This document shows positions 515-64,000 of a stretch of 64,000 nucleotides of DNA, in pieces. The stretch is taken from IMG/VR virus record IMGVR_UViG_3300036715_004471, positions 62,001-126,000 of that record. One strand, written 5' to 3'. The notes under the pieces were generated by a model. The model made no database searches. It was not told where the DNA came from and saw nothing but the letters and a program-made list of their open reading frames with translations. Made by a program: the position numbers and the translations under genes. Numbering within the stretch: position 1 is the stretch's first letter; every line of letters starts with the position of its first letter.

Positions 515-748
515 TTGTGTCTCCGGATTTCTCACTGGACCAATCCCGGGTTGAGTATCCTCACCATCCCAAGATAGATCGAACGTTGTCTGTTGATGTC
601 CAGGACGATCCGGCTCCGTTGATGGGGGAGGCGGAACGCGCAAAAGACCTTCATGACCTTGATATTGTTGGCTTTGCCAAGCCATATGATTCCTCTAACT
701 GGAATGCCCTCGCCACCTTCCGGTGGCGAGGGCATTCCAATGATTGTT

Positions 749-2170
749 TCAGATCTTCTTGCCCAGACGAAGAGCGACAATCGCGCTGCTCACCTTGGCG
801 TTGGGACTGGCGTTGCCGCATCTCCAGGCTTCGAGAGAGCCGTCCTTGGCATCGAGATACCAGTTACGAGCGAGGTTATCGGGCTCCGCGAGAGCGGTCT
901 CCATGCCATTGGCGAAGATGTTGTACAGGAGTTCCAGATCCTGCGCCGATGCCCAGGAGTAGTGACTCTGATAACAAGCAGCCAGGAGCTTGATGAAAAC
1001 CTCCTTGTTCTTCTCCAGACTCGCACGCGCAGCCGCGACATCGCAGTTGACGATGGTCTGAATCGTCTCCTCCTCAGTCGCCTGCCACAGATCCATCCAG
1101 CCCTTCTGACCGAGAATCACCACCTTGCGAGCTACATCGATCACCAGGTTCATGATGAACGGATGCGACAACCACGCATTGGAAAGCGGACGGTACTCGA
1201 TACCGTGAGGCGGGAGGCGGTACTCACCGGGAAGACCGTAGAAGATGCGACGCTTCTTTGCGTCGAACTTCGCGAAGAGCGACACGCACGCAACACCAAG
1301 GATGGTATCCAGAGCCTTGACGACAGGCACAGCCTTCTCCTCGGAAGTTTTACCCACTCCGAAGTGCAAGTGACCTCCGGCGCTGCGGAAGGGAACCTCT
1401 CGTCCAGGCGGGAGCTGCGTCTTGATGCCGTAAGCGTTGAGGCTCGGCATACAACCGAAGGCGACATGCTCATCAGCAGCCTCCATCAGCATCTCATGCG
1501 GAATATCGAAGACGCTCTTGATCGCGAGCTTCGCACCGGGGAAGCGCTTGCGCGCGGCATCGTAGACACCACGAAGACCAGCCGCAACCGAATCGGTATG
1601 CACCTCGTTGCAACCAGCCGCAAGCGTCGTGAACTCCGCTTGGAAGCCATCCCAGTACATCTTCTGGGGAGTCGGTCCAGCACCACCACGCGAGCCGTAC
1701 TGCTGGAGAGCGGAGGTGACATCCTTACCATCCTTGCTATCGAGGAAGAGGAAGGCAGGAATCATCTTGCCATCCGCATCCGTCACGAAAATCTCCGGAT
1801 CGGAGCCAATCGTGAAGCCGTAAGCCAGGTTCGTGGGAAGAGAGAGAAGTTTCAGCTTGCTCTTCAGCTCCGGAGGCGTCGACTCACAATCAAACTCATC
1901 GTTCAGATTGAAGTAGGTCACGAACGACGTACCAGTCTCCGTGCAGATGCAGCGAAGGCTGGCATAGTCCATGGTGACGCTCGCCTGCGTCACCAGAAAC
2001 TTCAAGCTGGGGAGCTTGTATTCCCTACGGATCTCATTGGTACGATCCGGCGACGAGGTGTGGTGATTCCAGTAGCACGCCGGAGGCATGGTGAGCTGTT
2101 TGGCGGTGAAGATGAATTCGCCGAACTTGGTGAACTTACCGCCGAGATTCAACTGTTGAATGGTCTGCAT
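749..2170 (-). CDS. Phage phiEco32-like COOH-NH2 ligase type 2 (copy 1)
   Basis: Motifs TIGSDPEIF, WDGFQAEF, FGCMPSLNAY, RSAGGHLHFG, RRIFYGLPGEYR, GIEYRPLSNAW. Confidence 0.85.
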   Translation of the reverse strand: MQTIQQLNLGGKFTKFGEFIFTAKQLTMPPACYWNHHTSSPDRTNEIRREYKLPSLKFLVTQASVTMDYASLRCICTETGTSFVTYFNLNDEFDCESTPPELKSKLKLLSLPTNLAYGFTIGSDPEIFVTDADGKMIPAFLFLDSKDGKDVTSALQQYGSRGGAGPTPQKMYWDGFQAEFTTLAAGCNEVHTDSVAAGLRGVYDAARKRFPGAKLAIKSVFDIPHEMLMEAADEHVAFGCMPSLNAYGIKTQLPPGREVPFRSAGGHLHFGVGKTSEEKAVPVVKALDTILGVACVSLFAKFDAKKRRIFYGLPGEYRLPPHGIEYRPLSNAWLSHPFIMNLVIDVARKVVILGQKGWMDLWQATEEETIQTIVNCDVAAARASLEKNKEVFIKLLAACYQSHYSWASAQDLELLYNIFANGMETALAEPDNLARNWYLDAKDGSLEAWRCGNASPNAKVSSAIVALRLGKKI

Positions 2171-2339
2171 GACTTCTTTCTATTGCTGAGAGTGATTGGT
2201 TACTTACCCCGTCACTATCCTTGGTGGATCGAGGCACCGATGGGAACGAAGGAAGCAACCTCTCAGCTTCAATGCTTCGTGGTTGCTTGTTACACCCTTG
2301 CCGCTTGACTTAGCTTGATGGGTAGTGGCAATGCCTAAT

Positions 2340-2368
2340 GCCCGTCATCCCGAGAAGGGATGACGGGC
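2340..2368. terminator. Perfect 12-bp intergenic hairpin (terminator or processing stem)
   Basis: GCCCGTCATCCC-GAGAA-GGGATGACGGGC just downstream of the 2381 stop; no clear U-tract. Confidence 0.5.
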
Positions 2369-2380
2369 TCAGGCTCGATC

Positions 2381-2704
2381 TCAGAAATCATCCCACGAAT
2401 TGGCGGGCGCCTCGTATGGTTCAACCAGAAGCTCGTTGATCCGAGCACCATGGTTACTGAACATGGCAATGGCAGTAACAGGAGAAAGCTCGACTGAGCT
2501 ATTATTCATGTTACCGCGACCGTACACCTCCTGAAAGAGGACCAGGTTTTTCTCCTGGCGATTGTACATTAGTCGGATCCGAACATGGTTTTGACCCGAA
2601 TCATCGTTCCATTCAGCAACCTTCTCGAAACGTTTGGAACTAAAGGGATCAGAATAGAAAAGCATTCTATTTCCTTTGTTAAAGATTGGGGAGATGCTAA
2701 GCAT
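2381..2704 (-). CDS. Hypothetical protein
   Basis: Fills the gap between the two ligases, co-oriented; true start may be the internal Met. Confidence 0.55.
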   Translation of the reverse strand: MLSISPIFNKGNRMLFYSDPFSSKRFEKVAEWNDDSGQNHVRIRLMYNRQEKNLVLFQEVYGRGNMNNSSVELSPVTAIAMFSNHGARINELLVEPYEAPANSWDDF

Positions 2705-2719
2705 CTCCCCAATCTTAGT

Positions 2720-4195
2720 TTACGCCGCGAGGTGCGAAGGATCCTTGTCGCGGGCACGGAGGAAGTTCGTCACGTTCGGTTCAACAGAATGGTTGTGGCT
2801 GTGCCACGACCACCCGCTGTGCAGGCGCCAGTTGGTCACAAAGTCCTTGGGATCCTTGACCGCAGAAGACACGCCACTCATGAAGATGTCGAACAGAATC
2901 TCCATCTCCTTCTTGATCTGCTTGACGGACTTCTCATCGTCGTAGTCATCGATCTTGTAACAGGCGCGCAGCAACTGGATGAAAACATCCTTGTTACGAG
3001 TAAGGATCTCACGAGCCTTCTCCGCATCACAGTTGATGATGCACTCGATGGTCTCTTCCTCCGTGGTCTTCCAGAACTTCATGAAGTCACACTGACCGAA
3101 CACAACGCATTTGCGCGCCACATCAATGATCAAGTTCATGATCACTGGATGACACAACCACGCGTTGCTCAGAGGGCGATACTCAATGCCGTGAGGCGGG
3201 AGGCGGTACTCACCGGGAAGACCGTAGAGCTGACGACGGCTGGGATCATCGATACCATCGAAGAGCGACACACACGCGACGCCGATGATGGCGTCGAGAG
3301 CCTTGACGATCTTCTCTGCATCCTTATGGGCATCCTTGCCAACACCGAAGTGGATATGACCGCCCGCCGAACGGAAGGGAACCTGACGAGCCGGAGGCAT
3401 CTTGACCTTCAATCCGTAGGCATTGAAGGAGGGCATGCAACCGAAAGCAACATGCTCATCATCTGCATTCGCAAGAATCTCCGGCTCGATGAAGAACACC
3501 GAACGAAGGCTCAGGCGCGCCTCGGGAAAGCGACGACGAGCAGCATCATACACGCCACGCATACCAGCAGCGATGCTGTCGCTGTGATAACCGAGGCAGT
3601 GATCCGGACGCGTGGTGAACTCCGCCTGGAAGCCATCCCAATACATCGGGCAGTCGCCGTGGTCGTTGAACAAGTCGTCCGAGTTCGGAGTACGATCGCT
3701 TCCATCCTTGCCATGGAGGAAGAGGAAGGCAGGAATCATCCGACCATCCTTGTTCTCTACGAAAATCTCCGGATCGGAGCCAATCGTGAAGCCGTGCGCC
3801 AGCTCGTTGTAGAGCGTGCGAGCACGAATCTCATCGAACTGAGCATCCACCTTCGCGTAGTCCGAATGTTTGAGATCGATCAGCTCGACCTCATGATCAC
3901 GACTGAAGTGGAAGTGTTCGATCTTGCCAGCGGGGTTGACGTAGGTCAAGTACGCACTCTTGTGGTATGCCGAGTCCTGAATCCTTCTGACACTCATCAG
4001 CGTATGCTTGCTGACTCTTTCCTCTTGGGTAGTATCACCGTAGTAGTTGACCACCCGAGGCATCTTCGCATCGGGCAGGCGAATGTAGACCGGACCACCC
4101 TTGGGCTTCGAGGGGTAACTCGTGGAGAACAACTTGGTGAGATCATGGATCTTGGTCAGCTTCACTTTTTTCTTTTCCTTCTTTACGCTCGCCAC
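2720..4195 (-). CDS. Phage phiEco32-like COOH-NH2 ligase type 2 (copy 2)
   Basis: Same motifs as copy 1 (TIGSDPEIF, RSAGGHIHFG, YGLPGEYRLPPHGIEYRPLSNAW); frame stays open upstream with Lys/Ala/Pro-rich sequence. Confidence 0.85.
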   Translation of the reverse strand: MASVKKEKKKVKLTKIHDLTKLFSTSYPSKPKGGPVYIRLPDAKMPRVVNYYGDTTQEERVSKHTLMSVRRIQDSAYHKSAYLTYVNPAGKIEHFHFSRDHEVELIDLKHSDYAKVDAQFDEIRARTLYNELAHGFTIGSDPEIFVENKDGRMIPAFLFLHGKDGSDRTPNSDDLFNDHGDCPMYWDGFQAEFTTRPDHCLGYHSDSIAAGMRGVYDAARRRFPEARLSLRSVFFIEPEILANADDEHVAFGCMPSFNAYGLKVKMPPARQVPFRSAGGHIHFGVGKDAHKDAEKIVKALDAIIGVACVSLFDGIDDPSRRQLYGLPGEYRLPPHGIEYRPLSNAWLCHPVIMNLIIDVARKCVVFGQCDFMKFWKTTEEETIECIINCDAEKAREILTRNKDVFIQLLRACYKIDDYDDEKSVKQIKKEMEILFDIFMSGVSSAVKDPKDFVTNWRLHSGWSWHSHNHSVEPNVTNFLRARDKDPSHLAA

Positions 4196-4270
4196 TTTCT
4201 TGGTGAGCTTTGCCTTGAGGGCGCTGATGGGCTTCTTGTTCGTCTTTTTGGCAGCCGGCTTCTTCGAGGG

Positions 4271-4350
4271 AGCCTTTTTCTTGGGGAGCCTTTTTCTTGG
4301 GGAGCCTTTTTCTTGGGGAGCCTTTTTCTTGGGGAGCCTTTTTCTTGGGG
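4271..4350. repeat. Tandem repeat, 5 x 16 bp (AGCCTTTTTCTTGGGG)
   Basis: Five identical adjacent copies read directly from the sequence. Confidence 0.95.
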
Positions 4351-4434
4351 AGCTGCAATCGTCTTCTTAGGCTTCGCCGGACTCTTCTTTGCCGGAGTAA
4401 CCTTTTTCTTTTTGATTGTTATTTGTCCTCACGA

Positions 4435-4629
4435 TCAGTGAAAGATGGGAAGTCCCAGAGTCAGAATGATCACTCCAGCAATCACACCTTCGTAAGAACG
4501 AAGGGCAAATTGATAGGCGATCCAACGATTGCGCTTTGTCACCTTGATCAAGTCTTTCAGATACGGTACAGAGTCAAGCCGTTCCTGGTTGGGTAACCCG
4601 AAATTATGCGGCTGAGGTTTCAGAAACAT
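4435..4629 (-). CDS. Small hypothetical membrane protein
   Basis: Co-oriented ORF with a C-terminal hydrophobic segment. Confidence 0.5.
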   Translation of the reverse strand: MFLKPQPHNFGLPNQERLDSVPYLKDLIKVTKRNRWIAYQFALRSYEGVIAGVIILTLGLPIFH

Positions 4630-4891
4630 CTGCTTGCTCCCAAAGAATGGAGATGAAAAAGAGGTGCCGTTGAACCCATGCCATAGATTCGACGGAACCT
4701 TCTACTTTTGCTTTCAACAACTCATTGAAAAACTGTGAAGACGTCAGCTCCACATTTCCCAATCGCGGATCATTTTTGAATCGCAACAAACGATTGGGAG
4801 AGGTCTTCTCCGACATTGCGCGATTAAACAAACCACGTGAAGGAAGTTTGCCATATGGCAGGCTGAAGAAATGTGACATGGCTACAACCAA
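4604..4891 (-). CDS. Hypothetical protein
   Basis: Co-oriented, overlaps its neighbours in operon fashion. Confidence 0.5.
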   Translation of the reverse strand: MVVAMSHFFSLPYGKLPSRGLFNRAMSEKTSPNRLLRFKNDPRLGNVELTSSQFFNELLKAKVEGSVESMAWVQRHLFFISILWEQADVSETSAA

Positions 4892-5151
4892 CCAAACAAG
4901 GAATCCGCAACAGCAATTTGCAATTTGAACTCCTCGAATCGATCCGCCGCGTTGACTGGATCGGCTTCATCCGTCCTCATGAGGATGACGTTAGTTGTAG
5001 TATCTACCAGATCAACCCGGTAAATATGTTCCTCACCTCGGAGTTGGAAAGTGCGAATGCGCATCTTCCCAATCGTTTCTGAATAACCTCTCAGGGCATA
5101 GATTCCTCCAGCCCAAAAGACTTCCAGTATTTTCAAACGTCCTAGATCCAT
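4882..5151 (-). CDS. Hypothetical protein
   Basis: Co-oriented ORF with ATG start. Confidence 0.5.
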   Translation of the reverse strand: MDLGRLKILEVFWAGGIYALRGYSETIGKMRIRTFQLRGEEHIYRVDLVDTTTNVILMRTDEADPVNAADRFEEFKLQIAVADSLFGWL

Positions 5152-5246
5152 GTCCTACACTCACGGATGGGGATAAGTCAGAATCAGAGCGGCGCAGAAA
5201 AGAAACGCCACTAACCCGAAACAGAGGGCGTATTTGAGATCCTCTT

Positions 5247-5852
5247 TCACTGCTTCGCCTTTGCTTTGCCCCATGGCAATCCGAAATCATTACGGCGAAT
5301 CTTGCACATTCTACCATCATGATGGGCGAACACAATGCCTTCCATCATATTGGTATTCAAGAAATGCGTGATTCCCTCGATGGTTCGCGGAACTTCCAGA
5401 ACCGTATCTCCATGACGTTTAAGCATCACGTAATCAACGTTCTCTGCATTGGCTCCAATGGGAGGACCAATCAACTCGTAAGTACCATCAGCAGGCTTGC
5501 GGAACTGAAGAACACGAAGCATCTCCCACCACGCTTGCATATGGTATTGGTCAGGGGCGTTGTTGAATAGACAACGAACCCAATGCGGATGATGACCAGT
5601 TACTGAATCTGGTTCTCCACAAGGAATGGCGCCTTCGGGAGCTGCTTTGTAAGTGCCGTCAGGTTTCCTTTTGGCATCGTACCTCTTGAAGAGGTTTCCC
5701 TTGATGACAGCACATGAAGTGCCATCCCACTTACGAGAAGCGGTACCTTCACCATTCAGAACCCACTCACACCCAGGAGTCACTTGGTCCGTCAACTCAA
5801 ACGAATTAGGTCCAGTGAAACGTCTGACCAGGAGACACGGCATCTTTTTCAT
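5247..5852 (-). CDS. ATP-dependent RNA ligase-like protein (DUF5565/RLIG1-like)
   Basis: N-terminal MKKMPCL..R, PGCEWVLNGEG, motif I RKWDGT, motif IV EGIVF, motif V KI. Confidence 0.7.
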   Translation of the reverse strand: MKKMPCLLVRRFTGPNSFELTDQVTPGCEWVLNGEGTASRKWDGTSCAVIKGNLFKRYDAKRKPDGTYKAAPEGAIPCGEPDSVTGHHPHWVRCLFNNAPDQYHMQAWWEMLRVLQFRKPADGTYELIGPPIGANAENVDYVMLKRHGDTVLEVPRTIEGITHFLNTNMMEGIVFAHHDGRMCKIRRNDFGLPWGKAKAKQ

Positions 5853-6157
5853 TTCTTTTTCTTCGCCGGCTTCTTTGATTTACTCTCGCGCTTGTCCAGC
5901 AGCTTGAGAAGACGCAACTGCGCCAGACGATGACCTTTGAAGATATCGCCGTGACTGAAAATTTCGCTGAACTTTGCTTCACACATTTCCATATCAAGGA
6001 CAATGCGGAGCATGTTCTTATTTTCTTTTGCCGAGTAAGGCTCTCCTCTTTTTCTGAGGTCTTTTAACTCAGCATATAGTCTGCGCTGTTTAACCGACAG
6101 ATCAACGAATGCACTAACCTTCCGATAGTGGACATCTTCAATCTGAATAGTTTTCAC
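5849..6157 (-). CDS. Hypothetical basic protein
   Basis: Stop overlaps the next start (ATGA); GGAG RBS ahead of an internal GTG (MKTIQ). Confidence 0.55.
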   Translation of the reverse strand: MKTIQIEDVHYRKVSAFVDLSVKQRRLYAELKDLRKRGEPYSAKENKNMLRIVLDMEMCEAKFSEIFSHGDIFKGHRLAQLRLLKLLDKRESKSKKPAKKKK

Positions 6158-6227
6158 AGCTTATTCTCCTTTGGTACGCACCCACGGAATTGGAATTCTC
6201 AATATACTAATACAATGGTATGTATTT

Positions 6228-6953: not shown

Positions 6954-6984
6954 GTATTTGTGCCTCCATTGACACTAAACGCCA
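6906..6984 (-). ncRNA. tRNA-like element with a 10-bp anticodon-type stem and no variable loop
   Basis: TGGCGTT/AACGCTA acceptor, GTGT..GCAC D-arm, AATACTTACC-CCGTCTC-GGTGAGTGTT stem-loop, ACGG-TTCGAAT-CCGT T-arm. Confidence 0.5.
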
Positions 6985-7925: not shown

Positions 7926-7932
7926 CTGTTCC

Positions 7933-15844: not shown

Positions 15845-15911
15845 TATTTTTATTTCCTTGATATTGTCGATTCTTCCTCCACGTTCATCCCACACTGATA
15901 TATGTCTCTTT

Positions 15912-19711: not shown

Positions 19712-19901
19712 GGGAAATCTCCTTCTTGATCTTGGGTTTGTTGTCGAATCGATGGGAGCCGGTTTGGCTTCCCGCTTGGTTGGTTCCGACCCCACTTGTT
19801 GATGGGTGCCGGTCTGTCATCGGGCAGCGATGCCTGATTGACTAGGCTTCTCAACCACCGGGAGCGCCCCACATCGATGGGGCAATCTCTCAGTCGTTGA
19901 T

Positions 19902-20009
19902 GAACTTGCCATCATCGACTCTTCTGTTATGAACAAGTTTACCGAAACGATGGGTCAGAAATACCTCGACATTATCAAGGACATAATTGACCTAAAAATC
20001 CGGAGGTAG
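19902..20009 (+). pseudogene. C-terminal remnant of a third Vsr-like endonuclease copy
   Basis: Translates ELAIIDSSVMNKFTETMGQKYLDIIKDII, matching ELAIIDSSVMKRF...QQFLDIIRKII of 6228..6953; no upstream domain. Confidence 0.8.
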
Positions 20010-53967: not shown

Positions 53968-54980
53968 GGCTTCTCCGTGAAAGGTTGGTTGATGGGTCAG
54001 AGAACCGCGCCCCGTCTCTCTCGACGTAAGGGCGCTGCTCCCGCCGATGGGTGTTTCCCACAAACAGGATGACGCTGCAACAGTCGCACTTCGCTCCACC
54101 ATTGTCGTTGTTGAAGATCCAACCCATGATGACCTCGATGGGTTATGCGATCACTCCGCAATCCTCGCCAAATCGATCATGAGCCCACTGATGGGCAGCG
54201 GACTCCGCCTCCGCGGCGGTAGCATGACCCATGCTGTATGGCACCAGAACTTTGCACATGGAATGCGCTTGCGTTCCGTACCAGTCAGAGCCGGGATGGG
54301 CGTCCCACGCCTGAGCGCAGAGATCGTCGGCGTTCGAGGCGCGCTCGCCTTCGATCACCTCGTCGGCGCAGACCGCCACATGGCTCAGATGGGCAGCCGC
54401 GCTGCTCGCCTTGTAGACCTTCTCCGTGGCGACGCGCAGCGCGCCCTTGGCGCCCTCGAACGCCATCATCTTGCGAAACGCGGCAGCCTTGGCACTCTTG
54501 ATGTCGCTCATGGGATTCCTCCGCAGAGTTGGAACGATGGGCTCAGCCGTGAACCAGCAGCGTGACCAGCGCCATCACGAAGGCGATGACCAGGAACAGC
54601 ACGCCGAGATGGGGCTTGCTGACCGCGGCGAAGCCGCAGCCCACGAACCGCACACCACGCGACACGGTGACCGCGCGGGTTTTGGGAACCAGATGGTACA
54701 CACCGATCGCCGCGAGAAGCCCCGCGAGAACCAGGAACAGGATGAACATACTCTCTCCGCTTCGATGAAAAGGATGGGTCGTAACGACCTTTGCTAGCTT
54801 GGGGCTTTGCCCCGTTTCTTGCGAGCGTGGTCCGTCTTTCCTTTAGAGCCCAATCCTGTTGTTGGATGGGGCGGGTTGACCTTCGATGCAAACCCGGTGC
54901 AAGCAGACTGCATTACCGTTGCTGCTCGTCTTTCGATGTTGCCGACAATCTCCAATTGATGGGTCCGGCGCATTGCGTCA

Positions 54981-55084
54981 TGGCGCGGATCATGCTATAT
55001 GCAAGCCCCATGCCTTGCCAAGTACGCGCCCTGTAAACTTTGGGGCTTTTGGCACGTATATGGCTATATGCACGCGCCATGCCA
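54981..55084. promoter_or_regulatory. Two head-to-head double sigma54-type elements
   Basis: 54981-55015 TGGCGCG-N4-ATGCT-ATA-TGCAA-N4-CATGCCT; 55050-55084 TGGCACG-N4-TGGCT-ATA-TGCAC-N4-CATGCCA. Confidence 0.7.
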
Positions 55085-56604
55085 ACCAAAACAGAAAAGC
55101 CAAACGACTCTGCCCCAGCATCCCTCGCGGGACACCAGGGACAAAAATCAGTAATCGTAGTAGGATTCTTCTAGCTCATCCTGAGCCTCGATGGGATCGC
55201 GGAAGAGGGATCCATCAGGTCATAGAGACACTCGTCGAAAGGATCCAGCGGGGGAAGATCGTCGATGGTGAAGAGAGCTTCCAGCGCCGCTTGCTCTTCC
55301 TCGATCTCTTGAAGCCCCTCGTTGATGGGGTTGAAGAAGTAGGGATCATCCTTCTTGGACGACCACCGAGTCCCAGGATCGCGATGTCGTCCCGAGTTGA
55401 GATCACGGCTGCGTTGATGATGGGTTCGTCCCCACTTCATGTAAGCCTCCTCAGATTGAATCTGATTCAACGACCAATCGACTTGGTGGATGGGTTTAGG
55501 TCTTGTCGGCGCGCTCTTCGGCGGCAGCCATCTCGAACACCTGATCCATGATGTCAGCGCCGATGGGATCCTCACGACGGATCCGAGCTTCCTCTTCCTC
55601 CGCGATGGCGAAGCCAAGCTTGATGAGATCGGGCGGCGCCTTCTTGTGAGGATGGGAAGGTCGCTCCGGCACCTTGCAAGCGCCGACGCTCTTGACGCCC
55701 TTCGACCGAAGCATGTCACCGATGGTTACCATATCTTGACCTCGATGGGTTCAGCGCACCGTCACCTTGCACTTGGCGCAGGTGTTGAAGCAGTTGTAGT
55801 TGACGACCTCCCGCAACGAAACCTTCTTGCGAGCCTTCTCGGATGGGTCGAGGCAGGCGACATGCTTGACCGTCACCGTGCCCTTGACGAAACACAGCGG
55901 GTTTGCATCCAGTTTCTCTTGAAGACGTTGCTGCCAGACGGGCTTTGCCATGACAACCTCCAGAACCACAGAGTGATGGGTCATACCTTGGGAAACAACC
56001 ACGAGTAGACGCCGCCCGATTGCGCGCGAATACCGCACATGACCTCGTAACGCAATCGGAAGTTGCCCAGGATACCCCTTGGACACCAGTCGCTCTCCAC
56101 CATCTCGATGGGTGGAACCCACGTCGTCGGGTCAGCCTCGGTGTAGTGAGGCTCCACCAGCCGGAACAGATGGGTGATCAGCTCGGCGCAATCGCAGGCA
56201 TCGCGCCGCTGGATCGCCCGCTTGTTCTCCGCGGTCGCCGTGGCGATCCGAATCTCGTGCATGAGGCGAAGGGCTTGGATGATCAGCCGCTCCGCTTCGC
56301 GCACCTTCTCCAGAATCTCGGGGTTCGTCATGTCGATCCTCCGATCCCCTGAGGGATGGGTCAGTCGGGCTTGCCGTCATTATCCGCCCAGAACGCCGGA
56401 GCGGATTGGTAGGACCAAGGCTGGTCGTCGCCGTAGCCAAGCGGCGTCTGCATGAGACGAAAGGCAACGCGATCGGAGATGGGGAGGAATACCCGCCGAG
56501 CCAGTCCAGCCCCCGCATGTGAACCTCGTCACCTTCGTAGATGGTGCCGGGGGAATTGCAGTCGATGAACTTCATGGCTCAGCCTACCTCCCTTAGAAGA
56601 TGGG

Positions 56605-56829
56605 TTACTCCGAGAGCACCACCGCGACATTGCTGCCGTGGACCTTCTCTTGAACCAGCACCTCGGGAGCGATGGGGTGCTGGTCGTGAACGAAGCTGAC
56701 CCCGTACAGGTAAAGGTCTCGCGCATCGCGCAAGCCGATCCCGATCGTTTCACGGATCACCTTGATGCACGGGTACTTCTCGCGCGGTAGGGTGAGACAG
56801 AACTGGACCCAGGCTTCTTGAGGAGTCAT
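56605..56829 (-). CDS. Small protein with ribosomal L7/L12 C-terminal-like motif
   Basis: KYPCIKVIRETIGIGLRDARDL resembles KI.VIK.VRE.TGLGLKEAKDL. Confidence 0.5.
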   Translation of the reverse strand: MTPQEAWVQFCLTLPREKYPCIKVIRETIGIGLRDARDLYLYGVSFVHDQHPIAPEVLVQEKVHGSNVAVVLSE

Positions 56830-57558
56830 GCCTTCTTCTCGACGTTCTCGACGATGGGGAGGTCGCAGGTGAAGTTGGGAACCTTGGCGAGCCCGCACGC
56901 CTCGTGCAGTCCGTCGCGGAAGCCTAGCGCCTGATTCCAGTCCTCGCGCCAGTTGAACGAGGCGTCGCCGTAGTCCGACCACGCCTTGTTCCGACGCTCG
57001 ATCTCGATGGGGTCGGTCGTGACCTCCGTCTCGAACTCGGGACGAACCGGACGCTTGTCCGTGAGATGGACGACGCGGCGCTCCGCCGCCAACCACGCCA
57101 ACCACAAAGCCCGCTGAACTTCCGTCATGTCGCTCGTGTTGCTCATGGACTCGCCCTCGTGCAGAGGTGGATGGGTTACTTGGGTCCGTATCGGAGGAGC
57201 AGCCAGCCCGCCACGGCGGCGAGCAGAATCCCCACGATGCCCGACGAACACAGCAGCCCGATCGAGACGCCGCCCATCAGGTAGAGAACGGCGAGCACGA
57301 ATTGGTTGATCTTCTGACGCCGACGAAGCTCTTGAAAGGTCATGGTCGTGACCCTCAGTTGCTCTGCGGCTGGTCGAACTTGATGGGCGGGAAGCCGTGG
57401 TTGGTCCGCATGTTGAAGGCGACGCCCGCGCGGAAGATGTCGCGCGGGGTGACCGGAACCACGTTGCCGGCGGAAGTGATCATGCAGAGCTTGCCGTTGA
57501 CGATCTTGGTGTGAAACTTGAGCATCATGTCACTACCCTCCGCTTCTTGGAAGATGGG

Positions 57559-58020
57559 TTAGCTGAACGAGACGACCCGATAGCCGCGCCGATCGCAGAT
57601 GACGGACCAGCCGAAGTTGCAGAGCGCCACCGCGATGGGCTGGTAGCACACCGATCCACCGTTGGTGGACATCGGCTTGCCGCATGCCTCCTCCCAATCC
57701 TGATGGGTTCGCTGTGCAGCTTCGATCATGGATCGCACCGCAGAGAGCGCTTCGGACTCGCTCCGCCGCGTATCGCCGTAACCGGAGCCAGAGACGGGCG
57801 TGGTGTCCTCGTGAACGCCCTTGCCGCGGAGCCCGAGATCCACCGCAGCGCACTCGCTGCCGAAGAGCGATGGGGAATACGTCTTCCCGTCGTAGGTATT
57901 GGTCCAGGGAGCCTTGACGATCTCCTCACCGATGGGCTTGCGGCAGTCGAAGACGCGCAGCCAGGAAGGAATCTCTTGCCCGAGGAAAGAACCCGTGATC
58001 TCGATGGCGAGCTTGTTCAT
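57559..58020 (-). CDS. Hypothetical protein
   Basis: GGAG RBS before MNKLA; the longer ORF call overlaps tRNA-Asn. Confidence 0.6.
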   Translation of the reverse strand: MNKLAIEITGSFLGQEIPSWLRVFDCRKPIGEEIVKAPWTNTYDGKTYSPSLFGSECAAVDLGLRGKGVHEDTTPVSGSGYGDTRRSESEALSAVRSMIEAAQRTHQDWEEACGKPMSTNGGSVCYQPIAVALCNFGWSVICDRRGYRVVSFS

Positions 58021-58049
58021 GGTCTTGCTCCAGAACTTTATAGGATGGG

Positions 58050-58124
58050 CGTCCAGAGGAGGAATCGAACCTCCGACATTCCGCTTAACAGGCGGACGCT
58101 CTAACCGAACTGAGCTATCTGGAC
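58050..58124 (-). tRNA. tRNA-Asn(GTT)
   Basis: GTCCAGA/TCTGGAC, GCTC/GAGC D-stem, TCCGC-CTGTTAA-GCGGA, GGAGG-TTCGATT-CCTCC, discriminator G. Confidence 0.93.
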
Positions 58125-59519
58125 AGATGGGAAACACAGGGACGTTCGCGACTTCCGAGTGACATCGCCTTGGCGATGGGTACGGCGAGGTCTTACGTCC
58201 CCATGCTTCAAGTTTTCAGCCGGCAGTTCCAGCCATGCCGTTGATGCTGCTCCCTCCGCCTCCGCCGTGCGATGGGCACGCCTGCCACCGATCGTGCGGA
58301 TTGCTGTTGAGGGTACGGAATCTCCGAGGAGGCAAGCGCTCCACCATGGTCAAGCCCCGCGCCTTGAGTCCGGCGATGAGGACCGATGGGCGCTCAGCGG
58401 AGTAACCCAGCTCCTCACTCCACTCTTGAGCCTGCGCGAAGGTGAAGGAGGTTTGATCGTTGTCGCGGATCTCTTTTGCGAGTCTATCCAACAAGGCTTC
58501 GTTCATGACCTTACCCTCTTGGTTGAGAAGATGGGATTAGGCGAACTTGATCCCCGCGCTGTAGCTAGGGACGCTCCGCCCAGGTGAAGATGGCGTTGAG
58601 ATCGCTGATGGACACATCCAGGGGCTTGCCCGCAGGATGGGTCAGGCGAAGGTCGGGCAGCCCGTCGGGCGCCTCGATCACGACGGTGTTGACGAAGCTA
58701 CCGCCAGGCAGCTCGCAACAGGGGAGCTTGGCTCCGATGGGCTTGCGGATCATCATGTCGCTACCGTGTTCTGCCAGACCTCGCCGTGAGGATGGGAGAA
58801 GAGGCGCTGGCAGTAAAGCGCCTGGTCTTGGAGCTTCAACACCTCGCGAGCGTCGAAGATGGGCAGCACGGTCCCGTTGTGGAACGCCTGGATCACGAGC
58901 CAGGCGCGCTCCTGGATGGGTAGCTTGTTCCACGCCTCCACGCAGGAGAGCGCGCCTGCGATGAGGAAATTGTTGAGGAAACGTTCCATGGCTCTACTTC
59001 CTTTCCTCGGGGTCTCCGCAGAACAGGCAGAAGTCGTGGATGGGGTCTTCGTTCTCGTCGTAGACGCAGAAGCCAGTCGGACTGGTCGAACAATCCCAGG
59101 TTCCGTGCTCCAGCCAGGATGGGCTGTCGGACTTGACCGCTCGAACCAGCATGTCCTCAGAAAGATGGGTTGGGGAGCCGGCTAACGGCTCCGAGGCAGC
59201 ACGCGGTGCTCTTTCTTCCACAACGCCAGCCGTTCGGCAAGCGGGGTCAGATGCAGCGCGTCGCCAGGAAGGATGGGCATCCCCGTCGCCGTCAGCTTTG
59301 GATTGCTTGCCCACTGTCGGCGCTCCGCGCCAGACGCACGCAACCACAGCCCGTGCCGATGATTCAGTCCACGCACCACAGATGGGTTACCCAGGCGAAG
59401 ATGCCAATCATCGGGGAAACCGACGAACTGACGTTGATTCCAGATTGCCGGGTAGGTGCTCACACCTTCACCGCCTTATTGAGAATGATGGGTCGGGCGC
59501 CCGCTTGGGCGTGTGGACT

Positions 59520-59625
59520 TGGCTTATCTTTTGCAATATGCAAAGCCCGTTCCAACCATAATCAGAAAAGCGGGCAACACTATCCGACCTTGGCATTAGT
59601 TTTGTAATAGGCAAAGCCCGTGCCA
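59520..59625. promoter_or_regulatory. Two head-to-head double sigma54-type elements
   Basis: 59520-59554 TGGCTTA-N4-TTGCA-ATA-TGCAA-N4-CGTTCCA; 59591-59625 TGGCATT-N4-TTGTA-ATA-GGCAA-N4-CGTGCCA. Confidence 0.7.
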
Positions 59626-59649
59626 GACAAAAGGGGAAAGCAGAAACGA

Positions 59650-59685
59650 CCCCGCCCTGGTGCCCGTGAGGGCACCAGGGCGGGG
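59650..59685 (-). terminator. Intrinsic terminator
   Basis: Perfect 16-bp stem CCCCGCCCTGGTGCCC/GGGCACCAGGGCGGGG just after the 59688 stop, T-rich sequence downstream on -. Confidence 0.75.
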
Positions 59686-59817
59686 CATCACTTTGGATTC
59701 GTCGGCTTGGGAGGCGGACGCTTGACCTTGGGCGGACACTTGCCCGCGTACCAGCGCTTGCCGTCGAAGGTGTGCGGATGGTACTGCTGGCACTTGTCAC
59801 ACAGCTTGTACATGGGG

Positions 59818-60141
59818 CTACTGCGCAGCCGCGTGGAGATCCTCCAGCGTTTCGATGGCGCGGATGTGCTCGCTCGCAGCCTCATGAACCTGCTGCCGAC
59901 TGATGTGGTTGTCGTGCTCGGCGCCGAGAACGTCTTGATGTGCGTCCCAGGCGATGGCGCACTCCGTCACCGCGCGATCGGCGCCTTCCTCGGCGACCAC
60001 CTTGAGGGCGTGTTCGCGAGCCTCGTTGGCGGCGAACTTGCTCTGCCGCACCTTGGCGCGCACCTCCGTGCGCTTTTCACGGCACTTGCCAACCGCCACC
60101 AGGGTGAGAAATGCGTTTGCCTTTGCTTCCAGAATGCTCAT
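59818..60141 (-). CDS. Hypothetical coiled-coil protein
   Basis: GGAG RBS, co-oriented. Confidence 0.6.
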   Translation of the reverse strand: MSILEAKANAFLTLVAVGKCREKRTEVRAKVRQSKFAANEAREHALKVVAEEGADRAVTECAIAWDAHQDVLGAEHDNHISRQQVHEAASEHIRAIETLEDLHAAAQ

Positions 60142-60569
60142 GGTTCATCTCCGAATTGGTGTTCGATGGGTCAGGTGAAGGGGAAGACCATCTTGCCCGC
60201 GACGTAGCGCGCGCAGGAGTGCTCGCCCCACTTGCCCTCAGGATGGGCGGTGCGCATCACCACCGCTTCGGGATCGGCGAAGGGGAAGTCGGGGTCCGAC
60301 CCGTTTCGGGCGAGCTGATGCGCCTCCGTGTGCGAGAACGCGGCACAGGGCGGAAAGTCGTCGATGGGTTGCGTGCAGCCGCCCGCGGGCAGGAACACGA
60401 CGAAGTATCGGGAAGCCAGAATGATCTCGACCATGGGATCCTCCGCAAGAAGCAGTCTGATGGGTTCGTCGCATGGGAGAGGGGAAGAACGTGGGCTTTG
60501 GGACACACTTACACCCGCCAGCGCAAGTGTGCCGCCCTTCCCCTCTCCGATGGGATAAACCCCGGAGGG

Positions 60570-60598
60570 GCGAGGAGAGGGGGAACCCCTCTCCTCGC
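60570..60598 (-). terminator. Hairpin after the 60607 gene
   Basis: 13-bp stem GCGAGGAGAGGGG/CCCCTCTCCTCGC. Confidence 0.55.
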
Positions 60599-60606
60599 GG
60601 GAGACA

Positions 60607-61953
60607 TCACGCGCGGGGCGCGGTGTTGAGAATGCCGTGGCTGTCGGAAGCGGTGTCCCGCTCGATCGCGGCGGCGCTGACGATGGTGCCCACGGGCAGG
60701 TAGGCGTGCGAGCGGCTCGCGGTGTCATAGATGCGGAGCGCTTCCTCGAAACACGCGGTCGCGCCGCGGGAGTGAAGGGCGGCGCTGACGCGCTCCACCG
60801 TATCGGGATCCGAGGGACCGCTCGACTCCAGGGAATCGAGATCCGCGCCAATCTGGTCGAGCCGCTCGTAAGCGAGCGCCTCCAGGCGAGCGAGGGCGGC
60901 GTCGAGATCCTCCGCGCAGCCGGCGCGGAACTTAAAGCCGTCCACCTTGTCCTGCACGTCCGTGATGGGGTGCAGGTACGGGAGCAGGGGGGCGACCACC
61001 GGGGAGGGAACCTCGATCACGCGGTAGCCCGCGTTTTCCAGGACCGCCTCACGAACCAGGCGGCGGTTCACCTTGACCTTGGCGCCGGACTCGTCCGTGA
61101 TGGGGCGAGCGACCACCTTCGTGTGCTGCTCGATTCCCCGAGTGTAGGGGAAGTTGCCGAGGAGCTTGGCGGAGAACTCGACGTGCTCCCCCGCGAGGAC
61201 GTGGGCGCGAAGGTCCGCGAAGAGATCCAGCTCCTCCGCCGCGATGACTTCCCGCTGGCAGAGATCCAGCCCGAGGGCGCGGATGGGGTTGGGCATCCCC
61301 TTGACGAAGCCCGTGGTCCCCTCCTGCCGCGCAGCGTAGGCGTCGGCGGAGCGGTGGGCGCGGATGGGAGCGGGGAACCCCTCGTCGCGACGCGCCTCGA
61401 TGTTCAGCTTGGCGTGCGCGTCCCGACGCGCGGCGTCGAGCTGCGCGCCGTGGGGCTCGCCGGAGGCGTAGCCGCAGAAGGCGATGAGGCTGGCGCGCTC
61501 GTCCTTCTTCTGCTCGGAGGAGTCCCACACCATGATGGGCTCGCCCTTCTGGTTGAGGCGGAGGGAGCCCGCCGCGTGGACCTCACCCGTGATGGGATCG
61601 GTGGTGTCGATCTCGTAGCGGGCGGGGCGCTTGCCGGCGACGCGGAGCGCGGTCAGGATGCCCGCGGCGTCGAGCCCGCCGGTGCAGGGGATGTTGACGT
61701 TGACGGCGCGGGGCGCCGCCTTCTCCGCCTTGTCGGCGGACTTCGCCTTGCGACCCTTGCGACCCTTGCGCTCGGCGGGCGTGATCAGGGTCGAGCCCTG
61801 AACGTTCGCCGTCACCGTGGTGCTCGTGGCACCGATGGGGTTGGGGGTCTTGGCGTACGACGCCATCAGCAGGGCGGTCGCCGCGGGGTCGCTGGCGAGG
61901 AGGAGGGCGAGAGAAGCGGTGGCGGCGTTGGGACGGGAGGCACGGAGAGTCAT
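60607..61953 (-). CDS. Large hypothetical (probable early) protein
   Basis: 448 aa, very high GC3, first gene downstream of the largest sigma54-type cluster; no family recognised. Confidence 0.75.
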   Translation of the reverse strand: MTLRASRPNAATASLALLLASDPAATALLMASYAKTPNPIGATSTTVTANVQGSTLITPAERKGRKGRKAKSADKAEKAAPRAVNVNIPCTGGLDAAGILTALRVAGKRPARYEIDTTDPITGEVHAAGSLRLNQKGEPIMVWDSSEQKKDERASLIAFCGYASGEPHGAQLDAARRDAHAKLNIEARRDEGFPAPIRAHRSADAYAARQEGTTGFVKGMPNPIRALGLDLCQREVIAAEELDLFADLRAHVLAGEHVEFSAKLLGNFPYTRGIEQHTKVVARPITDESGAKVKVNRRLVREAVLENAGYRVIEVPSPVVAPLLPYLHPITDVQDKVDGFKFRAGCAEDLDAALARLEALAYERLDQIGADLDSLESSGPSDPDTVERVSAALHSRGATACFEEALRIYDTASRSHAYLPVGTIVSAAAIERDTASDSHGILNTAPRA

Positions 61954-62241
61954 GGCGGTGACCTTTCGTTAGAGAGACTTGACCCGTTTGGGACCAACCC
62001 CAACGGGGATGGGTCGCTCTCCGTTAGGGCGCGGTAGCTATCTGCTACCGCCTCGCGGTGTCTTGCGACCCGCTTGACTACGCCAGCCGGGAAGGCTGGA
62101 TGGGAAGCGCACCATTGCGCTTCGCCCGGCTAGCTCATCAGGGAGCGTCGCCGGTATCTCACCACAATTAGTGCGATTGATGGGCTCCCCCTATTCTGAT
62201 TGATGTGCTCAATCTCCCCTAGCTCGGGGCTCGGCAGCCCT

Positions 62242-62464
62242 CGGCATCGATCTTGCATCTTGCAATCTTCGTGCCAGTCGTATCAGTCCATTCAATATAT
62301 TGGTCCGACCTTTGCATATTGCAATCTCTAGACCATATCGTCAATTCTGTGAAAACAGAATTGGTCTTGGCATATTCAATGCAATATGCAAAGAGAGTGC
62401 CAAGGTAAAAAGGAAACGCGAAAGGGGAGCCCGAAGGCTCCCCGCGACTGGCACGGATCTTGCT
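62242..62464. promoter_or_regulatory. Three double sigma54-type elements plus one single site
   Basis: Dyads at 62242-62276, 62301-62335 and 62368-62402 (the - half of the first is a perfect TGGCACG-AAGA-TTGCA); single + site TGGCACG-GATC-TTGCT at 62449-62464. Confidence 0.75.
62424..62443 (-). terminator. Intrinsic terminator with UUCG tetraloop
   Basis: GGGGAGCC-TTCG-GGCTCCCC on -, followed by TTTCGCGTTTCCTTTTT. Confidence 0.75.
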
Positions 62465-63122
62465 AGAGAGAAGCAATCGCTAGCATGGCAACAAGCTCCG
62501 CGCGATCATCAGGATCCCAACCGGGGAGATCCAGATCCCAGAACCATGCCGGGGCGAGATCGCACAGATTCGACGTTACCTCGTCGAAAGCCGCATCGTC
62601 ATCGGTCGACGTGGCATGGTAAGTGTAGAGCGCGGCGAGGATATGTTCGACGGTGGTGCACATACTCCACACGCAAAGCGCAGGAAGATGGGCATTGGAT
62701 GGGTTTTACAGTCAGAACGGAAGCGCCCGTTCTCCCCCTCGACGGGGAATATTGGGGCGCTTCCTAGTTGTCGCCGCCCCTCAGTTGATGGGGTCGATCC
62801 CGTCGAAGTTGACTTCCTTCTCGCGCTCCGCGAGGGTCAGCCGCTCGCGCTTGGCACGCCGCTTGTCCTTGCCGCGGATCTCGCCCGTGAGCTTGGCATC
62901 GGCGCGCATGTCGCGCGTCTGCGACTTGATCAGGGAATCCAGCTCCGAACCCGACGAACGCTTCTTCATGATGATCCCTCGAATCCTTCGAAAGATTGGT
63001 TGCTTAGAAACGCCTGGGACGGAAAAACCCGTCTTCCAAGCGGGTTGTCCAGGCATCGAACCGAAGCCAGTAATCGAGCAGCTTATCCAGCATACCCGAC
63101 GCCTGGCTCTGGTCTGGATGGG

Positions 63123-63400
63123 TCACAGCATCCCCGCCGCCGAGGCGACGACGAGCACCACGGTCCCGACGATCCACACGATGAGACCCTTCCACTGTCC
63201 GATCCAGATCGACACCACAGCCAGTGCCGTCCCGGCAATGGTGATGGGTACCTCCTGCGGGGCGAGCGACATGCGCCTGGCGCCGAGCAGCACCATGAGC
63301 GCGACCAGCGCCACCGTGCCGAAGAACCACACCGCGATACCCTTGCCCTTGCCGATGAAAAGGGCGACCAGATTGAGAGCGAGAACGAGGAGAGCCATGA
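63123..63400 (-). CDS. Small membrane protein
   Basis: Almost entirely hydrophobic from MALLV; stop directly followed by CCCATC. Confidence 0.55.
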
Positions 63401-64000
63401 ACTTGCCTTCGGTCAGTGCAGGATGGGTTGGACCACCAGCGCGGCAGTCGCCGCGGCATAGCCAATGCCACCGAGCCAACGCCAGCGGGCGGTGAAGCCA
63501 TAGAAGCCCACCGCCCAAACCAACATCAGAGTACAGGGGGTCCATCTTGGATCTGGGCTACTTGCCCACCACGATGGGCTCCTGCCCCTCCCTCTGCCAG
63601 GTGCCCGACCCACCAGCGATGGTAGTCTGCATCAGGAGGCTCGCGGCGCGACGGCGCGCGATGGGGCTGTCCTCGACCTGGACGGTGGTGGTCTTGCCGG
63701 CGATGGTGGTGGTGAGGGTGATCATGGTCCTGCCTCCTACCTCTGGTAGATGGGCTTGGGATAGACGACCGTGATCCCGACCCGCTTGGAATAGCGAACC
63801 AGCTCGCCAAACGTGGCTTGTGCCCGACGTTCACCGTCTTTGGTGTCATGATGGGCACTGATCGCCCAGTAGCTAGGGCTGATCTGAGCCGAAACCACGA
63901 TGATCGCCTTGGGTGACATAAGTATTCTTATTTCCTTACCTTGATGGGATAAAGAAAGAAAAAAGATGTCGATGGGTAGTCGAAGAGTTTTCTTTTCCCT

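Follow-up and report, generated by a model that had tools for sequence, protein, structure and literature searches.

A polar hexamer repeated along the early genes of a large phage and its relatives, and its possible role as a tag on early transcripts

What could lead a phage to write one exact six-letter word, in one orientation, about every 100 bases through its early genes? The question is raised by a window of 64,000 nucleotides (positions 62,001 to 126,000 of IMG/VR record IMGVR_UViG_3300036715_004471), which belongs to a phage of roughly 450 kb and in which GATGGG on the + strand, or CCCATC on the strand of nearly all genes, recurs at high and graded density. The initial annotation described this array from the sequence alone and proposed that it is a cis-acting code read by a sequence-specific factor, but it could not choose between a signal in DNA and a signal in RNA. 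Coordinates of the features considered here are given in Table 1.

The array as first described is real. GATGGG occurs 245 times on the + strand of the window and CCCATC three times; counts per 10 kb are 11, 15, 19, 28, 58, and 87, followed by 27 in the last 4 kb, which is almost exactly what had been counted by eye. Markov models of order 1-3 predict 20-89 copies. The z-score for strand asymmetry is 15.4, against 6.0 for the best independent hexamer once the motif is masked. Every one-letter neighbor of GATGGG is at background (4-34 copies), and the flanks carry no consensus. The opposite orientation is probably avoided, since three copies compare with 13-25 expected from Markov models, and none is found in coding sequences (CDS) at 1-48 kb where 4.5-6.9 are expected (p about 0.003-0.013); it is not depleted in the CDS of the dense region, where two copies compare with 2.5-3.2 expected.

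The excess is not an amino-acid or codon artifact. In 10.4 kb of called CDS in the dense part there are 67 copies, against 25 +/- 3.5 under a synonymous shuffle and 7 +/- 2.5 under a codon-order shuffle; in 22 kb of CDS at 1-48 kb there are 48 copies, against 14.6 and 8.0. Copies in the dense-part CDS occur in all three frames (41/18/8), and non-coding RNA leaders carry copies at the same 80-130-nt spacing as genes. All 41 Pro-Ile pairs in the dense part are encoded CCC-ATC, and Pro-Ile is itself 4-fold over-represented. Spacing at 48-64 kb is regular: three gaps are shorter than 40 bp, against 32.5 +/- 4.2 for random placement (10-fold too rare), and the mode is 80-130 bp, with no helical, 3-nt, or long-range period. 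Intact homing-endonuclease genes carry none or one copy and the terminator-promoter cassettes carry none, whereas a decayed gene of this type has gained copies in the sense of the - strand transcripts (Table 1).

Table 1. Features of the hexamer array and its surroundings (positions in the 64,000-nucleotide window)
Position	Strand	Feature	Details
621..63976	-	Whole array inside the window	245 copies of CCCATC on the gene strand (GATGGG on +); density rises from about 1/kb on the left to about 8/kb on the right; true start about 84 nt beyond the window end (window-equivalent about 64084)
48000..64000	-	Dense plateau	125 copies in 16 kb, median gap 106 bp, almost no gaps under 40 bp; GC 60-70%; tiny ORFs and 5' leaders
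60139..60173	-	Type example of the intergenic module	Stop codon TGA (60171-60173), CCCATC (60165-60170), 23 nt carrying the Shine-Dalgarno sequence, then ATG (60139-60141) of gene 59818-60141
60607..61953	-	Gene for a 448-aa orphan protein conserved in all relatives	Seven in-frame copies, all Pro-Ile; four or five of these positions shared with orthologues at 70-76% aa identity, one with a 35% orthologue
58044..58131	-	tRNA-Asn (58050-58124) bracketed by two copies	One copy ends 1 nt before the tRNA, the other starts directly after the discriminator base
62184..62692	-	Motif-free 508-bp gap	Intrinsic terminator; cluster of sigma54-type -24/-12 elements (sense at 62402 and 62276, antisense at 62464 and 62383, arranged as palindromes); then the leader of the 448-aa gene, where copies resume
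59492..59690	-	Second terminator-plus-promoter cassette	17-bp terminator stem at 59686-59649; two sense sigma54-type elements; first copy 46 nt after the last -12 element and 23 nt before a GTG start
53746..53967	-	73-aa single S1-domain (OB-fold) RNA-binding protein, candidate reader (a lead only)	Encoded inside the dense array; the only recognisable nucleic-acid-binding domain among 47 early proteins
48099..48104	+	Reverse-oriented copy	In the stem-loop of a terminator-like hairpin; the other two reverse copies, at 51510 and 57273, are inside sense genes
19801..19975	-	Decayed remnant of a +-strand homing-endonuclease gene	Three copies gained in array orientation, 73-75 bp apart; the intact copy at 6171-6953 has none

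The array starts abruptly just beyond the right end of the window, as seen in sequences L001 and L002, next to a conserved sigma54-type element. It plateaus at about 8 copies per kb for 16 kb and then decays in the direction of transcription. The same hexamer and layout occur in at least seven related contigs, in which 71-92% of sites are fully conserved, against 25-38% for other hexamers; the word is conserved across phages whose proteins have diverged to about 35% identity. The array start is internal in three long assemblies, and shorter contigs break near it at different nucleotides, so there is no evidence of a physical genome end there.

The placement of copies follows the landmarks of gene expression. 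The motif ends exactly 23 nt (26 genes) or 24 nt (7 genes) before the start codon in 33 of 70 called early genes of three phages; the same holds in 15 of 38 genes of a fourth phage and is seen in a relative with only 33-37% amino acid identity. The distance to the ATG is constant while the Shine-Dalgarno sequence moves between 3 and 11 nt from the ATG, and in long leaders of 170-690 nt the last copy still lies 23-24 nt before the start codon. This rule predicted two gene starts that are on record as called products, where the longest ORF was not. A stop codon ends 0 or 1 nt before the motif in 39 copies, against a background of about 10.

Copies are likewise positioned relative to predicted promoters. 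Sequences matching TGGCAC-N5-TTGCW, with GG and GC ten bases apart as in sigma54 promoters, occur in tandem clusters after terminators and at the conserved boundary element; their promoter function is inferred from sequence alone, and as many sit in palindromic arrangements an operator role is not excluded. After the last such element of a cluster the first copy lies 38-46 nt past the -12 element (about +30 from the predicted promoter) in 9 of 14 cases, and the zones upstream are motif-free for 80-635 nt. About 930 nt of terminator-to-promoter DNA in the dense part hold no copy, where about 8 would be expected.

The interpretation offered in the initial annotation is supported in part. Its core inference, a cis-acting code read by a sequence-specific factor, holds and is strengthened by conservation in relatives. 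The three positional rules favor the RNA or co-transcriptional alternatives that it named (antitermination, processing, or scheduled decay), and count against coating or translocation of the first-entering DNA. It had also suggested asking whether orientation flips with gene strand. No flip was found: eight sites in isolated opposite-strand genes all keep the array orientation and none is in the genes' own sense. These sites are in the trypsin-like gene (three), L171 8197-8736 (one), an endonuclease gene (one), L184 11435-12094 (two), and a small ORF (one), where L171 and L184 denote individual sequences in the comparison. Because these genes are islands inside one large co-directional transcription domain, this outcome does not decide between DNA and RNA; no large opposite-strand operon with copies was found, and the one 4.5-kb opposite block has no copies.

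The explanation that we favor, tentatively and with less than even confidence, is that CCCATC is a sense-strand signal of one large leftward early transcription domain, read as single-stranded nucleic acid, most likely as CCCAUC in the nascent or mature early RNA, by a protein with strict six-base specificity. In this view one copy is needed roughly every 100 nt of transcript, and in addition one copy sits at the 5' edge of the ribosome-binding region of each cistron, at -29 to -24 from the start codon. Our best guess at the effect is that the bound factor would mark and cover the immediate-early RNAs, protecting them from premature termination or from host RNases and handing them to ribosomes before the phage has remodeled the cell; transcripts made later would need this less, which would explain the decay of density with distance from the first promoters. 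The sequence analysis itself establishes that the motif is exact, polar, evenly spaced, under purifying selection, and conserved across a phage clade, and that its placement is locked to stop codons, start codons, and the predicted promoters. It is by inference that the RNA rather than the non-template DNA strand is taken to be what is read, that the reader is a protein, that the effect is protective or activating rather than destructive, that the sigma54-type elements function as promoters, and that the early S1-domain protein or ribosomal protein S1 is involved.

That no wobble-type variant is enriched argues for a protein reader rather than base pairing. The closest solved folds to the S1-domain protein encoded in the array are ribosomal protein bS1, YabR, GSP13, and the NusA S1 domain, but its link to the motif is only co-location. 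Other observations weigh against the RNA reading. It requires read-through sense transcripts across the opposite-strand genes that carry the motif. Predicted RNA accessibility of the motif is no higher than that of same-composition hexamers; the first copies lie 6-7 nt behind an outward-facing sigma54-type element, and no sense promoter upstream of them could be identified; and some transcribed early genes of 300-600 nt have no copy. A bolder form of this proposal, which the evidence does not exclude but which we consider unlikely, is that a clade of huge phages uses a dedicated six-base identity tag on its immediate-early RNAs, read by a strictly specific single-strand-binding protein, possibly a ribosome-associated S1-fold factor; the tag would give these messages privileged protection and ribosome access in a still-hostile host, and selection on it would be strong enough to impose a periodic Pro-Ile signature on dozens of proteins.

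Two alternatives, both considered unlikely, share a link to transcription. CCCAUC could be the cleavage site of a phage or host endoribonuclease that processes polycistronic early RNAs just 5' of each ribosome-binding site and chops early messages to shut them off, as T4 RegB does at GGAG but with a hexamer. This would fit the expression-linked placement and a density that follows the presumed temporal class of genes, and the window encodes an RNA repair set (RNA ligase, kinase-like AAA_33, and a cyclic-phosphate receiver domain), showing that RNA cutting and healing matter in this system. However, one or two cuts would inactivate a message, whereas even spacing, conservation of individual sites, and the reshaping of proteins point to each site mattering locally; no nuclease domain was found among 47 early proteins or about 40 larger window proteins, which represent only part of the 465-kb genome, and the bracketing of tRNA-Asn does not match the mature ends that a single cut position would produce. 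Alternatively, the hexamer could be read on the non-template strand inside the transcription bubble by a sigma-like or NusG/RfaH-like factor riding on RNA polymerase, as a repeated loading or pacing site that keeps polymerase termination-resistant and in step with the ribosome. The polarity of the signal, its first copy at about +30, its absence from untranscribed gaps, and a spacing of about 100 bp without helical phasing are in keeping with this, and read-through by polymerases would explain why islands of opposite-strand genes keep the array orientation. A polymerase-bound reader does not predict a register to the start codon that is independent of the Shine-Dalgarno position, known elements of this kind (ops, -10-like pause elements) act once per operon, and no NusG-, RfaH-, or sigma-like gene was seen in the parts sampled.

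A polar DNA signal unrelated to transcription is as doubtful as the polymerase-bound reader, although purely DNA-level models are not excluded because isolated opposite-strand genes keep the array orientation. Such a signal would be a Chi-like site that tames host RecBCD/AddAB entering from one side, or a KOPS/SRS-like guide for a directional DNA translocase or for entry or packaging, densest where it is needed first. Orientation is constant over all of the about 120 kb sampled, the reverse orientation is probably avoided, the motif is G-rich like Chi and KOPS, and phages lacking RecBCD inhibitors are known to accumulate Chi; the array is inferred to present GATGGG from its 3' side to an enzyme entering at the dense end, although no DNA end is shown there. 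The only hint of the host is a release-factor-like gene closest (48%) to Polyangiaceae MAGs. These models do not predict the start-codon register, the placement relative to promoters, or the absence from cheap non-coding terminator-promoter DNA. All eight copies in the roughly 9 kb on the other side of the boundary (L171 8,600-17,500) keep the same orientation, without the switch that KOPS shows at dif, and the 8.6 kb further upstream holds no copy at all. Evasion of a host Type III or Type ISP enzyme that cuts between head-to-head GATGGG sites is very unlikely to be the whole explanation. It would account for the orientation bias and the avoidance of the minority orientation, but it predicts loss of one orientation, not an excess of the other that is 4- to 24-fold over composition and 2.7- to 9.6-fold over codon-aware shuffles, and this excess already refutes it as a sufficient explanation. 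Nor does it predict even spacing, a gradient, or the start-codon register, and the three reverse copies inside the densest part would still give head-to-head pairs.

If this is real biology, it is a new layer of phage gene control, in which a genome-scale, strand-specific word overrides coding preferences and appears to have reshaped the proteins it runs through. The start-codon register gives a practical rule for annotating early genes, and the motif also marks early regions in metagenomic megaphage contigs. An exact 6-mer with hundreds of natural sites, natural knock-outs in mobile genes, and a candidate reader defines a clean experimental system for the open question of how very large phages secure expression of their first genes before they have taken over the cell; the motif could also become a portable tag for RNA stabilization or translation control.

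No described system matches the array. Chi sites and the KOPS/SRS oligomers of FtsK/SpoIIIE are also short, exact, G-rich, and strongly strand-biased over long distances, with density rising towards a target, but they occur about once per 4-12 kb, are tied to replication direction or dif, and have no register to start codons, stop codons, or promoters, whereas here up to 9 copies per kb are evenly spaced. The stoperators of mycobacteriophage L5 (gp71 sites) are many asymmetric sites oriented with transcription, often in short intergenic spaces and read by one phage-specific factor; they are 13 bp long, number about 20-40 per genome, are essentially intergenic, and are bound as duplex DNA by a prophage repressor, while the present motif is 6 nt long and graded, has hundreds of copies of which about half or more lie in CDS, and no repressor-like domain was found in the sampled proteins. 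The T4 RegB target GGAG is a short RNA motif concentrated in intergenic regions of early transcripts, read with the help of ribosomal protein S1 and setting the lifetime of early messages; it is a tetramer and the Shine-Dalgarno sequence itself, whereas here the Shine-Dalgarno GGAG sits 7-15 nt downstream of the motif. RegB sites show no even spacing, enrichment inside ORFs, or recoding of the Pro-Ile type, and no RegB-like protein was seen here among the proteins sampled. In T7, all copies of the asymmetric EcoP15I hexamer also lie in one orientation, through evasion of Type III restriction, but those sites are not over-represented, evenly spaced, or graded. Start-associated sequences (SAS) of Cluster K mycobacteriophages and upstream translational enhancers (S1-binding pyrimidine tracts, T7 gene 10 epsilon) share a conserved, oriented word at a fixed short distance upstream of the start codons of a subset of phage genes, and the region just 5' of the Shine-Dalgarno sequence is where S1 contacts mRNA. 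SAS is 13 bp long, includes the Shine-Dalgarno sequence, and has 10-19 copies; here only about 15% of copies are start-associated; in the window the number is about 28 of 245, and the rest tile ORFs and leaders at about 100-nt spacing.

The window is part of a very large phage contig, IMG/VR UViG_3300036715_004471 (446,541 bp), which is the same as JGI Ga0373634_0000013 (465,767 bp); window position + 62,192 gives the JGI coordinate. Nothing similar exists among deposited phage genomes, and a megablast search of the dense region against these genomes found no match. A second assembly (L003) is 100% identical and could not be used to assess microdiversity. Almost all genes are on the - strand, so in the sense of the messages the word is CCCATC (CCCAUC in RNA).

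The observation made in the initial annotation, a dense, polar and graded array of GATGGG, holds. GATGGG occurs 245 times on + and 3 times on -, the reverse copies lying where the initial annotation had placed them, and the counts per 10 kb are 11, 15, 19, 28, 58, 87 and 27. The word is an exact hexamer: each of its 18 one-letter neighbours is at background (4-34 copies), the flanks carry no information, and a search for a longer or degenerate motif gave nothing further. No other hexamer comes close in strand asymmetry, with z of 15.4 against 6.0 for the next independent hexamer, which reflects ordinary codon bias. The excess survives codon-aware controls; in 10.4 kb of called CDS in the dense part there are 67 copies, against 25 +/- 3.5 after a synonymous shuffle and 7 +/- 2.5 after a codon-order shuffle, and in 22 kb of CDS further left there are 48 copies, against 14.6 and 8.0. 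The proteins themselves have been bent by the array, as all 41 Pro-Ile pairs in the dense part are encoded CCC-ATC and Pro-Ile is four times more frequent than composition predicts. Spacing is even: in 48-64 kb only 3 gaps are under 40 bp, against 32.5 +/- 4.2 for random placement, the mode is 80-130 bp, and no helical phasing, codon periodicity or long-range period was found. The reverse word is probably avoided, occurring 3 times against 13-25 from Markov models and 0 times against 4.5-6.9 in CDS at 1-48 kb, although in the dense-region CDS it is not depleted (2 against about 3).

The array does not fade out at the right end of the window but begins there. In the flanking DNA the first copy is at window-equivalent about 64,084, 6-7 nt from a conserved element of about 30 nt (TTGGCACG-N4-TTGCC-YCCCAAATAGGGG) that matches the sigma54 -24/-12 consensus and points away from the array. 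This element marks the start of the early region in three phages, whereas two unrelated AT-rich phage contigs have the core without any array. Beyond it come about 350 bp of AT-rich DNA and a trypsin-like gene on the other strand. From the start the density is about 8/kb for 16 kb, and it then falls to 6, 3, 2 and about 1/kb over the next 50 kb, always in the direction of transcription. On the other side of the boundary there are 8 copies in 9 kb, all in the same orientation, and the next 8.6 kb has none. The polarity in the far genome is weaker than it first looked, because four of the 10 copies in L010, a distant stretch of the same genome, are parts of tRNA genes. GC content follows the same course as density and is extremely uneven for one phage genome: 60-70% in the dense part (48000-64000), about 50% on the left of the window, and 31-44% (about 38% overall) elsewhere in the genome (L010, L015 and L171 1-8600). 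The same contrast appears in relatives; one possible cause is adaptation of first-expressed genes to a high-GC host, with later genes relying on phage tRNAs. A weak hint at a myxobacterial host comes from a release-factor-like protein encoded just upstream of the early region, which is closest (48%) to Polyangiaceae MAGs. Coordinates of these and other features are collected below.

Positions of features in the window, in other parts of the same genome (L001, L002, L010, L171, L184), in the 433-kb (L118) and 354-kb (L066) relatives and in two further phages (L044/L045, L037/L038)
Position	Feature
Window 62270-62470, 59500-59650, 54750-55170; L118 1750-3300; L066 1240-1480	Operon boundaries with tandem clusters of 2-5 sequences matching the sigma54 -24/-12 consensus, often as palindromes (TTGGCA..TTGCA..TGCCAA) with matches on both strands
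L001 6378-6410 (window-equivalent about 64083-64115); L118 886-908; L066 3509-3545	Conserved element of about 30 nt at the start of the early region
L002 1712-2797; L171 1-6613	Release-factor-like protein (PCRF/RF-1 domains), IF1/eIF-1A-like protein, RNase T, SET-domain protein, dUTPase-like protein and IMPDH, just upstream of the early region
Window 5247-5852, 7521-7925, 10280-11125, 14711-15937	RNA repair genes: RNA ligase with a PHA02142 OB domain, weak RLIG1 match, kinase-like AAA_33 protein, cyclic-phosphate-processing receiver domain
Window 9044-9928, 11130-12392; L184 15158-16177	NAD and nucleotide metabolism genes: NAD synthase, fused phosphoribosyltransferase/cytidylyltransferase-like protein, and adenylosuccinate synthetase just left of the window
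Window 749-2170 and 2720-4195; 4252-4369	Two paralogous phiEco32-type COOH-NH2 ligases side by side, with a GGACT/AH_C protein next to them in L184; five to six tandem 16-bp repeats (GGGAGCCTTTTTCTTG) beside the second gene
Window 6171-6953 (+), 28419-28793 (+), 19901-19975; L010 10001-10708	Zinc-ribbon plus Vsr/DUF559-like endonuclease gene, at least three copies in this genome plus one decayed remnant
Window 37214-37288, 37610-37683, 58050-58124, 37367-37444, 28028-28101; L010 rc 4500-7800	Three clear tRNA genes (Leu-CAA, Lys-UUU, Asn-GUU) and two borderline tRNA-like matches in the window; further tRNA cluster at 410-430 kb, where CCCATC is part of the acceptor/T-arm sequence of several tRNAs
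Window 8239-9186, 25116-25490, 45607-46155, 33890-34483, 40486-41484, 37657-38130	2OG-Fe(II) oxygenase, DUF7448 protein, DUF84 NTPase, two HNH endonucleases and a weak His-Me finger match
L066 235, 881, 985, 1093, 1206, 1942, 2926	The seven copies of the hexamer in the 354-kb relative
L045 13000-19000; L044	Hundreds of copies of a 12-bp tandem repeat (GACTTGG...) in two blocks of an unrelated phage contig
L037/L038 whole locus	Oriented word TTAGTGTTT with extended consensus in another large phage

The same hexamer, polarity and layout occur in the 433-kb contig L118 (43:1 in 10 kb, syntenic, proteins 33-37% identical), in the 354-kb contig L066 (7:0), in four shorter contigs from other samples (L174 53:1, L175 32:0, L176 17:0 and L178 108:1) and, at low density, in two further huge contigs (9:0). 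A partial scan of viral contigs for three copies spaced 80-110 nt returned mostly single chance matches, among which only L118 and L066 were real. In L066 all seven copies share a longer context, ATGATGGG on + (CCCATCAT in sense), four of them as CCCATCATGAAA. In DNA alignable between this phage and the 72-78% relatives, whole motif sites are conserved in 71-92% of cases, against 25-38% for other hexamer windows. In the conserved 448-aa gene, four to five of seven sites are at the same codons in close relatives and one is shared with the distant relative; there is therefore purifying selection with slow turnover. PHROGs, Pfam and PDB sequence searches of the conserved 448-aa and 77-aa early proteins found nothing. 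Mobile endonuclease genes lack the word, and a decayed copy of one has acquired three copies in the array orientation; the zinc-ribbon plus Vsr/DUF559-like gene has relatives at 45-60% identity in more than 40 other large phage contigs and behaves as a homing element. Polar hexamers in unrelated huge-phage loci looked like analogues but are not: GACTTG (178:7) belongs to a 12-bp tandem repeat, presumably coding, and TAGTGTTT (37:2) is a word spaced about 550 bp apart with extended consensus, likely a phage-specific promoter or terminator element.

The main new result is that placement is tied to expression landmarks. The motif ends exactly 23 or 24 nt before the start codon in 33 of 70 called early genes (this phage, L174 and L175) and in 15 of 38 genes of L178, where about 3-4% would be expected from density alone. 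The distance is constant to the ATG, while the Shine-Dalgarno sequence wanders between 3 and 11 nt from the ATG; the register holds in leaders of hundreds of nt, where the word could sit anywhere, and in the 35%-identity relative. Use of this rule predicted two gene starts that are on record as called products, whereas the longest ORF of one of them is not. In L178, 5 of 38 genes start directly after the motif, and there may be a second preferred register (0 nt) besides 23-24 nt.

A stop codon ends 0-1 nt before the motif in 39 copies, against a background of about 10; almost every intergenic spacer of 6 nt or more holds one copy, and spacer lengths cluster at 6-8, 13-16 and 27-31 nt. Operon boundaries consist of an intrinsic terminator followed by clusters of sigma54-type elements, identified by sequence match, which may be sigma54 promoters for phage early genes, an unusual arrangement, or operators of a dimeric regulator. 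These stretches are motif-free, amounting to about 930 nt in the dense part, where about 8 copies would be expected, and the first copy reappears 38-46 nt after the -12 element of the last promoter in 9 of 14 cases, which is about +30 of the transcript. Non-coding leaders carry copies at the same 80-130-nt spacing as genes, and a tRNA in the array is bracketed by two copies.

A signal locked to promoter, stop codon and start codon most likely belongs to gene expression and is read in the sense direction, either on the RNA or on the non-template strand in the transcription bubble. The register to the start codon rather than to the Shine-Dalgarno sequence points to a contact with the initiating ribosome, or to a reader that abuts its 5' edge, the region where ribosomal protein S1 meets the message. 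Wobble-type variants are not enriched, which argues for a protein reader rather than base pairing. Even spacing, conservation of single sites and recoding of proteins argue that each copy serves its own neighbourhood, which suggests a coverage function, rather than one cut or one loading event being enough. A protective or activating tag on immediate-early RNAs is therefore favoured, in which view the gradient would reflect a need that declines as the phage takes over the cell. The only recognizable nucleic-acid-binding protein among 47 early proteins is a 73-aa single S1 domain, whose predicted model (pLDDT 82) is closest to ribosomal bS1, YabR, GSP13 and the NusA S1 domain; it is a candidate reader, nothing more. 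The analysis establishes a real, strongly selected, clade-wide feature, whereas its role as an expression-level tag of early transcripts, although the most likely reading, is inferred, as are the reading by a protein and any protective or activating effect. The interpretation in the initial annotation, a cis-acting code read by a sequence-specific factor on either DNA or RNA, is partly supported, with the expression level favoured and a DNA-level role not excluded.

Some observations do not fit the RNA reading. Eight copies inside isolated opposite-strand genes all keep the array orientation and none follows its own gene, so that this reading needs sense read-through across these islands; a co-transcriptional or DNA-level reading accommodates the constant orientation more simply. 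The one 4.5-kb opposite-strand block sampled has no copies either way and lies in a motif-free zone, so it favours neither reading. Predicted RNA accessibility of the motif equals that of same-composition hexamers and gives no support, and no sense promoter could be located upstream of the first copies. Purely DNA-level models (Chi-like, KOPS-like, entry or packaging guides, Type III evasion) explain the polarity and perhaps the avoidance of the reverse word, but they do not explain the three positional rules or the absence from cheap non-coding DNA. The hypothesis of a physical genome end found no support, since contigs break near the boundary but at different bases and the boundary is internal in long contigs. 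A promoter (-10-like) reading was rejected because there is no -35-like partner, no purine at the expected start and too many intragenic copies; the resemblance to a sigma32 -10 element (CCCCAT) fails because the last C is invariant and the preceding base is not C.

Literature searches for the motif or for similar arrays found no description. The closest precedents are Chi and KOPS, L5 stoperators, T4 RegB sites, Cluster K start-associated sequences and the T7 EcoP15I orientation bias. Each shares one or two traits with the array and, Chi apart, each fails at least one defining feature tested here; none combines an exact hexamer, hundreds of copies, even spacing, a gradient, a start-codon register and an imprint on protein sequence.
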